Below are positions 27,501-33,500 of a stretch of DNA of 64,000 nucleotides, piece by piece. The position numbers and the translations under genes were made by a program. Where the stretch lies: NCBI GenBank assembly GCA_002269645.1, contig NIVC01002545.1, positions 1 through 64,000 of the forward strand, in the 5' to 3' direction. Source of the stretch: Macrostomum lignano. Taxonomy: Eukaryota. Below the pieces are notes generated by a model. The model was not told where the DNA came from. It saw nothing but the letters and a program-made list of their open reading frames with translations, and made no database searches. The stretch's first letter is position 1. The number at the start of each line of letters is the position of its first letter.

Positions 27501-30500
27501 CAGATCCTCAAATCTTCTCTAAATCCTCGAGATTCCCAGATCCCCAAATATTCCCCAAATCTTCGAGATTCCCAGATCCTCAAATCTTCTCTAAATCCTC
27601 GAGATTCCCAGATCCCCAAATATTCCCCAAATCTTCGAGATTCCCAGATCCTCAAATCTTCTCTAAATCCTCGAGATTCCCAGATCCCCAAATATTCCCC
27701 AAATCTTCGAGATTCCCAGATCCTCAAATCTTCTCTAAATCCTCGAGATTCCCAGATCCCCAAATATTCCCCAAATCTTCGAGATTCCCAGATCCTCAAA
27801 TCTTCTCTAAATCCTCGAGATTCCCAGATCCCCAAATATTCCCCAAATCTTCGAGATTCCCAGATCCTCAAATCTTCTCTAAATCGTCGAGATTCCCAGA
27901 TCCCCAAATTTTTCTCAAATCCTCGAAATTCCCAGATCCCCAAATTTTCTCAAATCGTCGAGATTCCCAGATCCCTAAATCTTCCCTAAATCCTCTAGAT
28001 TTCTAGATGTGAAATTCTTAAGCTTCCAGATCCCCATACTCGGTCCACTTCTCTCGAATTCTCGCAGACTCCGATGATGATGAGGCTGCTGGGATGGCTC
28101 AGCATCACTCGTTCTCTCCATCATCGTCAACCTACTCATCGGGTTCGAATCGAAACTCGCTGTCTGGCCTTAGCTCGCGGCCTCGATTGGTTTCGCCAGA
28201 TGTGACCGCCATCTATGAGAAAGTCTTGGACGGATCGATCGCGTTAGAGAACGTCTGCCTCGCCTGCGGCACTGTGCGGGTTGAACAGCAGCTGCCGCTG
28301 TTGATGGAGCACCCGGTGCTGCGCGGGTCGCTGTGCGTCGATTGCTTGGAAAACTATTTGACTGTGTGCTTCTCCGTTGGCGATGACGGCTGGTTCATGT
28401 ACTGCTCTGTGTGCGGCAGGCCCGGGAATCAGGTGCGCTTCTGGCTTGCTTTCTGTTAGCGTCTGCTTTCTGTAAGATCGTAATTTATTGAGACCTTTCA
28501 GCTTCTCATGCTCGAAGCTTCTCATGCCTAAAGCTTCTCATGTTCAAAGCTTCTCAAGCTCAAAGCTTCTCTTGCTCAAAGCTTCTCATACTCGAAGCTT
28601 TTCATGCTCAAAGCCTCTCAAGCTTAAAGCTTCTCTTGCTCAAAGCTTCTCAAGCTCAAAGCTTCTCATGCTCGAAGCTTTTCATGCTCAAAGCCTCTCA
28701 AGCTCAAAGCTTCTCATGCTCAAAGCCTCCCAAGCTCAAAGCTTCTCATGCTCGAAGCTTCTCATGCTCAAAGCTTCTCATGCTCAAAGCCTCTCAAGCT
28801 CAAAGCTTCTCTTGCTCAAAGCTCTCATGCTCAAAGCTTCTCATGCTCAAAGCCTCTCAAACTCTCATGCTCAAAGCCTCTCAAACTCTCATGCTCAAGG
28901 CCTCTCAAGCTCAAAGCTTCTCTTGCTCAAAGCTTCTCATGCTCGACACTTCTTATGCTCACATCCTCAAAGCTTCCCAAGCTTCTCATTCTTAAAGCTT
29001 CTCATGCTGGAAGCTTCAATTTATTCGATAAATAATTGAATTTTCAGGCCATGTGCGGTTCAGCTGAATGCGGCAGATGCTTCTGTCAAGGCTGCCTCAC
29101 CTTGCTGATTGGCCAAGATGCTTGGCAAAGAATTATCAGCGACAATGGGTGGCTGTGCCACCTGTGCCAGCTGCTGTCTGAGCGTCTCATTCAGCCCAGG
29201 AGCGACTGGCGGCAGCGACTGTATTAGTAGGTTTCTGCTGCTGATTGATGAGAATAGAGGGGAGGGGAGCATGAGAATGGAGGGGAAGAGCAGGTATGAC
29301 AATGAAGGGGAGAGGGCATGGGAATGGAGGGGAAGAGCAGGCATGAGAATGAAGGGGAGAGGGCATGAGAATGGAGGGGAAGAGCAGGCATGAGAATGAA
29401 GGGGAGAGGGCATGAGAATGGAGAGGAAGAGCAGGCATGACAATGAAGGGGAGAGGGCATGAGAATGGAGGGGAGAGGGCATGAGAATGGAGAGGAAGAG
29501 CAGGCATGAGAATGGAGGGGAAGAGCAGGCATGAGAATGAAGGGGAAGAGCAGGCATGAGAATGAAGGGGAAGAGCAGGCATGAGAATGGAGGGGAAGAG
29601 CAGGGATGAAAATGGAGGGGAAGAGCAGGGATGAGAATGGAGGGGAAGAGCAGGATGAAAATGGAGGGGAAAAGCAGGGATGAGAATGGAGGGGAAGAGC
29701 AGGGGTGAGAATGGAGGGGAAGAGCAGGATGAGAATGGAGGGGAAGAGCAGGATGAGAATGGAGGGGAAGAGCAGGGATGAGAATGGAGGGGAAGAGCAG
29801 GGGTGAGAATGGAGAGGAAAATCTGTAAAAATCAGGTTAATTACCCCAAAAGCATCGCTTTTATTTATTGCAGCCAAACGGAGCCCCATTCTCTGCACCC
29901 GCCGCCGCCGCCGGAGCTTCAGCGCAGCGCGTGCTGCTCCCAGCCGCTCCGAGTTCTGTCGCTATTCGATGGCGTGGCGTCCGCCTTGCTGTGCCTGCAG
30001 TCCGCCGGCCTGTCCGTAGAAATCTGCTTCGCCTCCGAAATCGACCCGGACGCAATCCGTGTGGCCGCTTGTAACCATGGCAACCGGGTGCGGCAGCTGG
30101 GCAGCGTCACCGAGCTGACTGAGGACCGGCTGCGCTCTCTGCTGCCCATCGATCTGCTGATTGGGGGCTCGCCTTGCAGTCAGCTGTCCGCTGCCAATCC
30201 CAATAGGTGACTGCTTGCTCCACTGGTGCACGTGTTCTGCCTCCCGGATCCTCAGTTGCTGGGCCAGCCTCCCGGATCCTCAGTTGCTGGGCCAGCCTCC
30301 CAGATGCTCAGTTGTTGGGCCAGCCTCCCGGATCCTCAGTTGCTGGGCCAGCCTCCCAGATCCTCAGTTGCTGGGCCAGCCTCCCAGAGTGTCAGTTGCT
30401 GTGCCAGCCTCCCAGAGTGTCTGCTGCTGGGCCAGCCTCCCAGATCCTCAGTTGCTGGGCCAGCCTCCCAGATCCTCAGTTGCTGGGCCAGCCTCCCAGA

Positions 30501-33500
30501 TCCTCAGTTGTTGGGCCAGCCTCCCAGATCCTCAGTTGCTGGGCCAGCCTCCCAGATCCTCAGTTGCTGGGCCAGCCTCCCAGATCCCCAGTTGCTGGGC
30601 CAGCCTCCCAGATGCTCAGTTGTTGGGCCAGCCTCCCGGATCCTCAGTTGCTGGGCCAGCCTCCCAGAGTGTCAGTTGCTGTGCCAGCCTCCCAGAGTGT
30701 CTGCTGCTGGGCCAGCCTCCCAGATCCTCAGTTGCTGGGCCAGCCTCCCAGATCCTCAGTTGCTGGGCCAGCCTCCCAGATCCTCAGTTGCTGGGCCAGC
30801 CTCCCAGATCCCCAGTTGTTGGGCCAGCCTCCCGGATCCTCAGTTGCTGGGCCAGCCTCCCAGAGTGTCAGTTGCTGTGCCAGCCTCCCAGAGTGTCTGC
30901 TGCTGGGCCAGCCTCCCAGATCCTCAGTTGCTGGGCCAGCCTCCCAGATCCTCAGTTGCTGGGCCAGCCTCCCAGAGTGTCAGTTGCTGTGCCAGCCTCC
31001 CAGAGTGTCTGCTGCTGGGCCAGCCTCCCAAATCCTCAGTTGCTGGGCCAGCCTCCCAGATCCTCAGTTGCTGGGCCAGCCTCCCGGATCCTCAGTTGCT
31101 GGGCCAGCCTCCCAGATGCTCAGTTGTTGGGCCAGCCTCCCGGATCCTCAGTTGCTGGGCCAGCCTCCCAGATTCTCAGTTGCTGGGCCAGCCTCCCAGA
31201 GTGTCAGTTGCTGTGCCAGCCTCCCAGAGTGTCTGCTGCTGGGCCAGCCTCCCAGATCCTCAGTTGCTGGGCCAGCCTCCCAGATCCTCAGTTGCTGGGC
31301 CAGCCTCCCAGATCCTCAGTTGCTGGGCCAGCCTCCCAGATCCTCAGTTGTTGGGCCAGCCTCCCAGATCCTCAGTTGCTGGGCCAGCCTCCCAGATCCT
31401 CAGTTGCTGGGCCAGCCTCCCAGATCCCCAGTTGCTGGGCCAGCCTCCCAGATGCTCAGTTGTTGGGCCAGCCTCCCGGATCCTCAGTTGCTGGGCCAGC
31501 CTCCCAGAGTGTCAGTTGCTGTGCCAGCCTCCCAGAGTGTCTGCTGCTGGGCCAGCCTCCCAGATCCTCAGTTGCTGGGCCAGCCTCCCAGATCCTCAGT
31601 TGCTGGGCCAGCCTCCCAGAGTGTCAGTTGCTGTGCCAGCCTCCCAGAGTGTCTGCTGCTGGGCCAGCCTCCCAAATCCTCAGTTGCTGGGCCAGCCTCC
31701 CAGATCCTCAGTTGCTGGGCCAGCCTCCCAGATCCTCAGTTGCTGGGCCAGCCTCCCAGATGCTCAGTTGTTGGGCCAGCCTCTCGGATCCTCAGTTGCT
31801 GGGCCAGCCTCCCAGATCCTCAGTTGCTGGGCCAGCCTCCCAGAGTGTCAGTTGCTGTGCCAGCCTCCCAGAGTGTCTGCTGCTGGGCCAGCCTCCCAAA
31901 TCCTCAGTTGCTGGGCCAGCCTCCCAGATCCTCAGTTGCTGGGCCAGCCTCCCGGATCCTCAGTTGCTGGGCCAGCCTCCCAGATGCTCAGTTGTTGGGC
32001 CAGCCTCCCGGATCCTCAGTTGCTGGGCCAGCCTCCCAGATTCTCAGTTGCTGGGCCAGCCTCCCAGAGTGTCAGTTGCTGTGCCAGCCTCCCAGAGTGT
32101 CTGCTGCTGGGCCAGCCTCCCAGATCCTCAGTTGCTGGGCCAGCCTCCCAGATCCTCAGTTGCTGGGCCAGCCTCCCAGATCCTCAGTTGCTGGGCCAGC
32201 CTCCCAGATCCTCAGTTGTTGGGCCAGCCTCCCAGATCCTCAGTTGCTGGGCCAGCCTCCCAGATCCTCAGTTGCTGGGCCAGCCTCCCAGATCCCCAGT
32301 TGCTGGGCCAGCCTCCCAGATGCTCAGTTGTTGGGCCAGCCTCCCGGATCCTCAGTTGCTGGGCCAGCCTCCCAGAGTGTCAGTTGCTGTGCCAGCCTCC
32401 CAGAGTGTCTGCTGCTGGGCCAGCCTCCCAGATCCTCAGTTGCTGGGCCAGCCTCCCAGATCCTCAGTTGCTGGGCCAGCCTCCCAGAGTGTCAGTTGCT
32501 GTGCCAGCCTCCCAGATTCTCAGTTGCTGGGCCAGCCTCCCAGATCCTCAGTTGCTGGGCCAGCCTCCCAGATCCTCAGTTGCTGGGCCAGCCTCCCAGA
32601 TCCTCAGTTGCTGGGCCAGCCTCCCAGAGTGTCAGTTGCTGGGCCAGCCTCCCAGATCCTCAGTTGCTGGGCCAGCCTCCAAGATCCTCAGTTGTTGGGC
32701 CAGCCTCCCAGATCCTCAGTTGCTGGGCCAGCCTCCCAGAGTGTCAGTTGCTGGGCCAGCCTCCCAGATCCTCAGTTGCTGGGCCAGCCTCCAAGATCCT
32801 CAGTTGTTGGGCCAGCCTCCCAGATCCTCAGTTGCTGGGCCAGCCTCCCAGAGTGTCAGTTGCTGTGCCAGCCTCCCAGATCCTCAGTTGCTGGGCTGCC
32901 CGCCTCCCAGGTGTCGTTTTCTTGGCCAGCCTCCTGTATCGAGAATCCTATGAAAATTTTAATTTTCTAATATCCCATCTCCGTCAGGCAAGGCCTGGCC
33001 TCAGAATCCGGACTGCTTTTTTTCGAGTTTCACCGAATTCTCGAACTGCTCCGTCGGATTGGCAGCCCGAGCGCCGACGAGCGCCAACGGCGCCCCCTGT
33101 TCTGGCTGTTCGAGAATGTGGCCAGCATGCGGCAGGAGGATAAGACTCGCATTTCCAGGTCTGTCTGTCCGTCTGTCCGTCTGTCTGTCCGTCTGTCCGT
33201 CTGTCTGTCCGTCTGTCTGTCTGTCTCTCTGTCCGTCTGTCTGTCCGTCTGTCCGTCTGTCTGTCTGTCTGTCTGTCTGTCTGTCTGTCTGTCTGTCTCT
33301 CTGTCTGTCTGTCTCTCTGTCTGTCTGTCTGTCTGTCTGTCTGTCTGTCTGTCTGTCTCTCTGTCTGTCTGTCTCTCTGTCTGTCTGACTGTCTGTCTGT
33401 CCTCCGTCAGTCCATTACTCTGCCCCACCCCGCAGGTTCCTAGGCCGCGAGCCGATCCGCCTGGACGCCGTCATTTTCTCAGCTCAGCGCCGAGCCCGCC

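Follow-up and report, generated by a model that had tools for sequence, protein, structure and literature searches.

How does a single short tandem repeat come to occupy introns of several unrelated genes that lie close together? The question is raised by 64,000 nucleotides of the flatworm Macrostomum lignano (GenBank assembly GCA_002269645.1, contig NIVC01002545.1, positions 1 to 64,000 of the forward strand), a stretch that was analysed as a whole and is referred to here as the window. An original prediction, made from the letters of this DNA, described a 29-nt minisatellite in introns of an SLC5A7-like gene, a DNMT3 gene and a Rap1 gene, always in the sense orientation. It was read either as a dispersing, intron-tropic minisatellite or as an RNA element under selection for orientation. 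We consider it probable that the repeat is an ordinary non-coding dispersed minisatellite family with a 28-bp unit and no carrier, which lies in pre-existing short introns, has spread as DNA and has been expanded in place.

The three arrays lie within 52 kb and are built from one unit, whose canonical form is CAGATCCTCAGTTGCTGGGCCAGCCTCC. Tandem Repeats Finder gives a period of 28 for each of them, with 20-95 copies and 91-93% matches within the arrays. The common unit that had been claimed is therefore present, while its length has to be corrected from 29 to 28 nt, the extra base being the first C of the next unit. The earlier 29-mer has 103 matches in the window at three or fewer mismatches, compared with none in 100 shuffles, and all of them fall inside the three arrays.

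7661-8284, minus strand: array in intron 2 of the SLC5A7-like gene, ~22 units (Tandem Repeats Finder and 29-mer scan).
30239-32896, plus strand: array in an intron of DNMT3, 95 units of 13 variant types (Tandem Repeats Finder and 29-mer scan).
59041-59594, plus strand: array in intron 2 of Rap1, ~20 units of types A, F, B and C (Tandem Repeats Finder and 29-mer scan).

The 29-mer matches are on the minus strand in the SLC5A7 array and on the plus strand in the DNMT3 and Rap1 arrays. The two methods agree with the earlier description of one minisatellite in introns of three unrelated genes, sense in each. Masking of the arrays left no solo or relic units anywhere else in the window. The family has the properties of a minisatellite, with a head-to-tail unit in the range of 10-100 bp, variant units, higher-order structure and decayed edges.

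Genes in the window were identified by stop-to-stop reading frames and Pfam, and splice junctions were read directly from the sequence. The first host is a sodium:solute symporter of the SLC5A7 type on the minus strand (Pfam SSF). The second is DNMT3 on the plus strand (~24516-34800), which has PWWP-like, ADD and methylase parts (Pfam DNA_methylase and ADD_DNMT3). A query from three DNMT3 exons matches a Macrostomum lignano UniRef entry in long identical stretches, with one difference in ~110 residues of the ADD exon, which places the window in this species or in a very close relative. Rap1, on the plus strand, is supported by Ras-family motifs. A D-amino-acid-oxidase-like gene and an inward-rectifier K+ channel gene are also present, both on the minus strand. 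The host introns are as follows.

7625-8418, minus strand: SLC5A7-like host intron, 794 nt, between exons ending …AFSLVFG and beginning GLFFANQMR….
30207-32987, plus strand: DNMT3 host intron, 2781 nt, phase 2, between motif IV and …GLLFFEF…FWLFENV.
59008-59611, plus strand: Rap1 host intron, 604 nt.

The array-free remainder of these introns is only ~50, 120 and 170 nt, the smallest value being that of Rap1. In the SLC5A7-like intron 134 nt separate the 5' splice site from the array and 36 nt separate the array from the 3' splice site. The DNMT3 array starts 32 nt from the 5' splice site. The Rap1 array starts 33 nt from the 5' splice site and is followed by 17 nt of intron, AG included, in line with the ~16 nt previously given. 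Counted by coding exons, the numbering of the SLC5A7 and Rap1 introns as intron 2 is right; in DNMT3 the host intron is the fifth or a later one.

The age of a host intron was compared with Lottia gigantea for DNMT3 alone. The Lottia gene has an intron at the same codon (directly after NPERK), following …SPCNDLSLANPERK and preceding …GILFFDF, and this intron is ~150 nt long with no tandem repeat. Because Lottia has an intron at this position, the DNMT3 host intron is ancestral, and the array arose or arrived inside an existing intron.

Cut into units, the arrays comprise 22 variant types. The canonical unit, type A, is the commonest in each array and accounts for 55 copies in total. The SLC5A7 array has a private variant, G (…CCCTGT…), which is the sole 29-nt variant and is present in six copies; unit A together with variant G gives higher-order periods of 85/113 bp. 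Within the DNMT3 array a block of 31 units (868 bp) occurs about three times as a higher-order repeat. Variants B, C and F (CAGAGTGTC…) are common to the DNMT3 and Rap1 arrays, which bears out the earlier observation of shared variant units. Two further features of these arrays are as follows.

59267-59436, plus strand: shared exact tract of 170 bp with units A-A-B-C-A-A, identical in the DNMT3 array, where it first occurs from ~30331.
32897-32935, plus strand: decayed end units on the 3' side of the DNMT3 array, GCCCGCCTCCCAGGTGTCGTTTTCTTGGCCAGCCTCC, closest to the F-type (score 50 compared with a null maximum of 30).

No exact match between the introns of Rap1 and DNMT3 is longer than this 170-bp tract, which holds two different variant units in the same order. 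The shared tract rules out independent growth of the Rap1 and DNMT3 arrays from a single unit. Multi-unit DNA of at least 170 bp was thus copied or converted between them. The exact matches that involve the SLC5A7 array are runs of canonical units only, of 81-103 bp. At the 5' edge of the Rap1 array the first two units are degenerate. The core of the unit is an 11-nt near-palindrome, GCTGG-G-CCAGC, and when four units are folded as single-stranded DNA hairpins form between units through this core (z=-2.2).

The family extends beyond the window. An exhaustive HMMER search with the translated DNMT3 array against 1.84 billion representative proteins gave two true matches, both of them M. lignano UniRef entries. 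In A0A1I8J1R5, an ARL3-like protein, the Arf domain breaks off at profile position 136 of 174 and gives way to the translated unit, as a CAGATGCTC variant and in canonical form. A0A1I8JRP3 contains a degenerate translated array at its N-terminus, including F-type variants, and has no Pfam domain. These matches indicate that the 28-mer family is present at two or more further M. lignano loci and that F-type variants are family-wide. A search of a word index of 5.8 billion proteins with the translated canonical repeat gave no match, although this search also missed the two entries found by HMMER. The exact 28-mer has 0 matches in JGI metagenome contigs and IMG/VR viral contigs.

The sense strand of the unit has no stop codon in any frame, an outcome with an estimated chance probability of ~0.6 given the base composition of the unit. 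The antisense unit has a TGA, and since the 28-nt period cycles the frames a stop occurs every three units. Only sense arrays can enter gene models, so the matches at further loci are uninformative on orientation. The two public M. lignano models, A0A1I8J1R5 and A0A1I8JRP3, run from exons into translated minisatellite and are annotation artefacts, which arise because the sense strand is free of stops in any frame.

Three routes have been given for the spread of euchromatic satellites: transposon carriage, reinsertion of extrachromosomal circular DNA (eccDNA) and interlocus gene conversion (PMC11610590); the 28-mer arrays fit this general picture. The first of these provides the rival explanation that survives best, although we think it unlikely. 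In this explanation the arrays are the central tandem repeats of a non-autonomous transposon, either a Helitron/Helentron or a miniature inverted-repeat transposable element (MITE), whose termini are eroded or very short. Such carriage of minisatellites into introns is known, with a 35-bp repeat in HelitronY1A of C. elegans and satellites in Helentrons of the oyster as examples (PMC7492417, PMC11610590). Helitrons have neither terminal inverted repeats (TIRs) nor target-site duplications (TSDs), so the absence of both does not exclude this class. The motif CTAA-T follows a AAAATTTT palindrome in the 3' flank of the DNMT3 array and CTAG is found at the 3' end of the SLC5A7 intron, but motifs as short as these are expected by chance.

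The flanks argue against a carrier. The comparison of array/flank junctions that had been proposed as a check was made on the three arrays and gave no shared terminal sequence. The 200-nt flanks on each side of the arrays align with one another no better than shuffles, and between the two 100-nt flanks of an array inverted and direct matches reach no more than 5-8 nt, a length that shuffled sequence also gives. When the tandem arrays were masked, a self-BLAST of the window found no dispersed repeat adjoining any array; it gave only four dispersed or inverted matches, namely the inverted repeats of a mariner element, a palindrome at 26892-27045 and two short repeats. The three copies do not share a 5' TC, or a 3' CTRR with a subterminal hairpin and A/T insertion, as would be expected of a Helitron or Helentron, and at none of them is the array bracketed by a TIR and a TSD as in a MITE or other TIR transposon. 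The arrays also begin and end at differing unit phases, 17-134 nt from the splice sites, which leaves almost no space for termini. One unit at separate loci with unrelated flanks, as found here, is a property of a dispersed family without a carrier. Transposon carriage is therefore disfavoured, because there is no TIR, TSD or conserved terminus and there is little room in the introns.

The only transposon seen in the window is a mariner at 49759-51072, which is unrelated to the arrays. It has 37-bp inverted ends that are 89% identical. Its transposase (Pfam Transposase_1) has an in-frame stop at 50203-50205, which splits it into open reading frames at 49855-50202 and 50206-50991.

Two further candidates were tried on the flanking sequence and rejected. 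An origin of the unit from an exon-intron junction of DNMT3 or Rap1 gave a score of 22, which is reached by 14% of random 60-nt exon windows. A 'GTATATGACGCG'-like motif beside the SLC5A7 array and downstream of Rap1 occurs at chance level.

Spread of the 28-mer family as DNA could have proceeded as follows. A multi-unit tract of one array would be copied to a non-coding site close by, or converted between existing arrays. Candidate routes are reintegration of repeat-derived circular DNA, templated or template-switch break repair, and interlocus gene conversion. Each copy would then enlarge in place through unequal exchange or replication slippage, which would yield higher-order repeats and leave decayed units at the edges; it is because of the higher-order repeats and decayed edges that we infer growth in place. 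The palindromic core could allow adjacent units to pair in single-stranded DNA and so favour slippage. How the copying proceeded and what part the palindrome plays are our interpretation of the repeat structure. That the minisatellite is dispersed with no visible carrier, as first proposed, agrees with the unrelated flanks, with the 170-bp shared tract and with the unit in two further M. lignano gene models; the reported lack of a TIR, TSD or shared flank was upheld by the flank alignment, the masked self-BLAST and the flank-match test.

Several points weigh against this account. The z-score of the hairpins is modest. The canonical units are identical in all three arrays despite the decayed edges, and identical units beside decayed edges require either recent transfer or continuing homogenisation between loci. 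A carrier whose termini are fully eroded or very short is possible. All four loci at which orientation was seen are sense to a gene, and if this were so genome-wide it would contradict coincidence. Finally, the copy number, intron enrichment and orientation bias of the 28-mer could be judged only within the 64-kb window.

The original prediction also treated preference for introns as a trait of the repeat. Using approximate gene models, a tandem array of some kind is present in 16 of the 18 introns of the window, where it fills 36-99% of the intron. The share of tandem repeats is 81% of intron bases (14,302/17,712), compared with 16% in the remaining non-coding sequence and 34% over the window as a whole. 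Every intron of DNMT3, of the K+ channel gene, of the oxidase gene and of Rap1 has an array of its own. The corresponding introns of the Lottia DNMT3 ortholog are without arrays. Because 16 of 18 introns carry arrays, and because of the difference in density between introns and other non-coding DNA, an intronic location is the rule for tandem repeats in this region and is no peculiarity of the 28-mer. The term intron-tropic does not therefore describe this family in particular.

The region's introns are 75-99% tandem repeat and the adjacent intergenic DNA is largely unique, an arrangement that may matter more than the 28-mer alone. Were such saturation general, it would bear on the evolution of intron size, on the difficulty of assembly and on a possible promotion of minisatellite birth and exchange by transcription. 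No description of it was found in the M. lignano genome papers that were read. Literature searches on Macrostomum minisatellites and intron tandem repeats gave nothing beyond a figure of 15% of the genome for simple and tandem repeats. The 28-mer itself is of use chiefly as a marker of assembly quality, in comparisons between homeologs and as a variable number tandem repeat (VNTR) in a neopolyploid model flatworm.

The sense orientation of the three arrays can be considered in the same way. By chance, three arrays would all take one orientation with respect to their host genes in 1 of 4 cases (n=3, p=0.25); coincidence is the most likely explanation. Sense bias as a property of the family is not supported by these numbers, and the fourth, ARL3-like locus adds no evidence, being subject to ascertainment bias. 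Across the intronic arrays of the window the pyrimidine fraction of the sense strand ranges from 0.14 to 0.77, and no transcription-linked strand rule was seen.

A more speculative reading would make the bias real. In Macrostomum, transcription-linked repair or template switching might preferentially make and exchange arrays inside transcribed introns while keeping their strand. Introns would then be nurseries of minisatellites in which neighbours seed one another, the 28-mer would be the youngest visible product, and its sense bias would hold genome-wide. We give this reading only a small chance of being correct.

From ~11000 to 50000 most arrays are C-rich on the plus strand, regardless of the orientation of the host gene. 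The cumulative GC skew rises before 10 kb and falls steadily from ~12 kb to 50 kb. The plus-strand C-richness and the skew may point to an asymmetry between the strands that has nothing to do with transcription and could be set, for example, by the direction of replication.

Selection on the sense strand is quite improbable as an explanation for the arrays. They would in this case be functional intronic RNA or DNA elements that provide a branch point, a pyrimidine tract or splicing-factor sites (CCUCCC or UGCU/CUG), or else sense insertions alone would survive near 3' splice sites. The three arrays and the ARL3-like locus are all sense, the sense strand is 59-61% pyrimidine with CCTCCCAG in each unit, and in Rap1, where only 17 nt of the intron follow the array, the last unit or the short tail probably contains the branch point. 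The three orientations are expected by chance at p=0.25, though, and the fourth locus could only have been detected in the sense orientation, only that strand being stop-free. Pyrimidine content gives no general support, the other intronic arrays being 14%-77% pyrimidine on the sense strand. The sense RNA of the Rap1 intron does not exceed shuffles in stability (z=+1.45), and it is the antisense that folds better (z=-2.2). An Rfam scan at the gathering threshold gave no match, and a tRNA scan was empty. The arrays have anything from 20 to 95 copies, and their variants show free drift; many decoy 3' splice sites on the sense strand would be a cost and no benefit. The suggestion of an RNA element under selection for orientation thus finds no positive support, either in the stability of the sense intron or in Rfam.

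Spread through an RNA intermediate, with reverse transcription of an intron or pre-mRNA and insertion of the product into transcribed DNA, would account for the matching sense orientation and for nothing else. It is highly improbable, since the three arrays show no poly(A) tail, target-site duplication, co-copied intron flank or copied splice site, no reverse-transcriptase element lies nearby and both ends of the arrays fall at arbitrary phases of the unit; the RNA intermediate of the original prediction has no footprint here. An introner-like origin is made unlikely by the ancestral intron position that DNMT3, the one host gene compared, shares with Lottia, and by the locus-specific flanks at the splice sites.

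The 28-mer arrays are surrounded by minisatellites with other units, and some of these share short words. Exact 13-14-mers are common to different minisatellites of neighbouring introns at 27211-28008, 30239-32896 and 34869-35662, and also at 38834-39471 and 40090-40820. The words TCCCAGATCCTCA and TCCCAGATCCCCA are shared by the 36/72-mer array and the 28-mer, TTTCTCAAATCCTC by the pair of arrays at 27211 and 34869, and TAGAATCTCACCC by the two arrays beside the K+ channel gene. Five independent pairs of arrays share such 13-14-mers, compared with a null mean of 1.1 and a null maximum of 5. This suggests that neighbouring arrays may seed or derive from one another locally.

Three other features of DNMT3 were observed. 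In the last coding exon (34608-34640) the frame breaks at CACTA[TA]CACGG, where one frame reaches a stop and the conserved continuation is in another; this may be a 2-nt insertion, a sequencing error or the mark of a decaying copy in a neopolyploid genome. A 158-bp near-perfect palindrome (26892-27045, 87%) lies in a large intron of the gene, between (TAGA)n and 36/72-mer arrays. In the intron after the 28-mer host, a (GTCT)n microsatellite (33158-33401) starts exactly at the 5' splice site, so that the donor GTCTGT is part of the repeat.

The 28-mer is best regarded as a further dispersed minisatellite or euchromatic satellite family without a carrier. Its closest known counterparts are Cast1-9 of Tribolium castaneum (PMC11610590) and the 1.688 satellite of Drosophila, as cited there, which likewise form short arrays of one unit scattered in gene-rich DNA. 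Cast1-9 arrays resemble the 28-mer family in having mostly unrelated flanks, irregular ends and more variable monomers at their edges, and for them spread by reinsertion of eccDNA or by interlocus gene conversion has been proposed (PMC11610590). The families differ in unit length, which is 28 bp here and ~170-360 bp in Cast1-9 and 1.688. In addition, all copies seen here are intronic, and three of them lie within 52 kb.

The 35-bp minisatellites carried by C. elegans Helitrons (bioRxiv 10.64898/2026.08.08.743475) and the satellite-like arrays of Pacific oyster Helentrons (PMC7492417) are similar in that one unit is found in introns of many genes, and in that no TIR or TSD is expected of them either. 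The C. elegans and oyster arrays sit inside elements with conserved termini, whereas the copies of the 28-mer share no flank.

Human intronic VNTRs (PMC8096271) share with the 28-mer a unit of 10-100 bp, internal variants, higher-order structure, edges that have decayed and enlargement by slippage or unequal exchange. They are usually confined to a single locus, whereas identical copies of the 28-mer unit occur at three or more loci, in a region whose introns are nearly saturated with arrays. Introners share with the 28-mer the property that one sequence, always sense, makes up nearly all of several introns. Unlike in introners, the splice sites and adjacent flanks of the 28-mer introns lie outside the repeat and differ between loci, and the DNMT3 intron predates its array.

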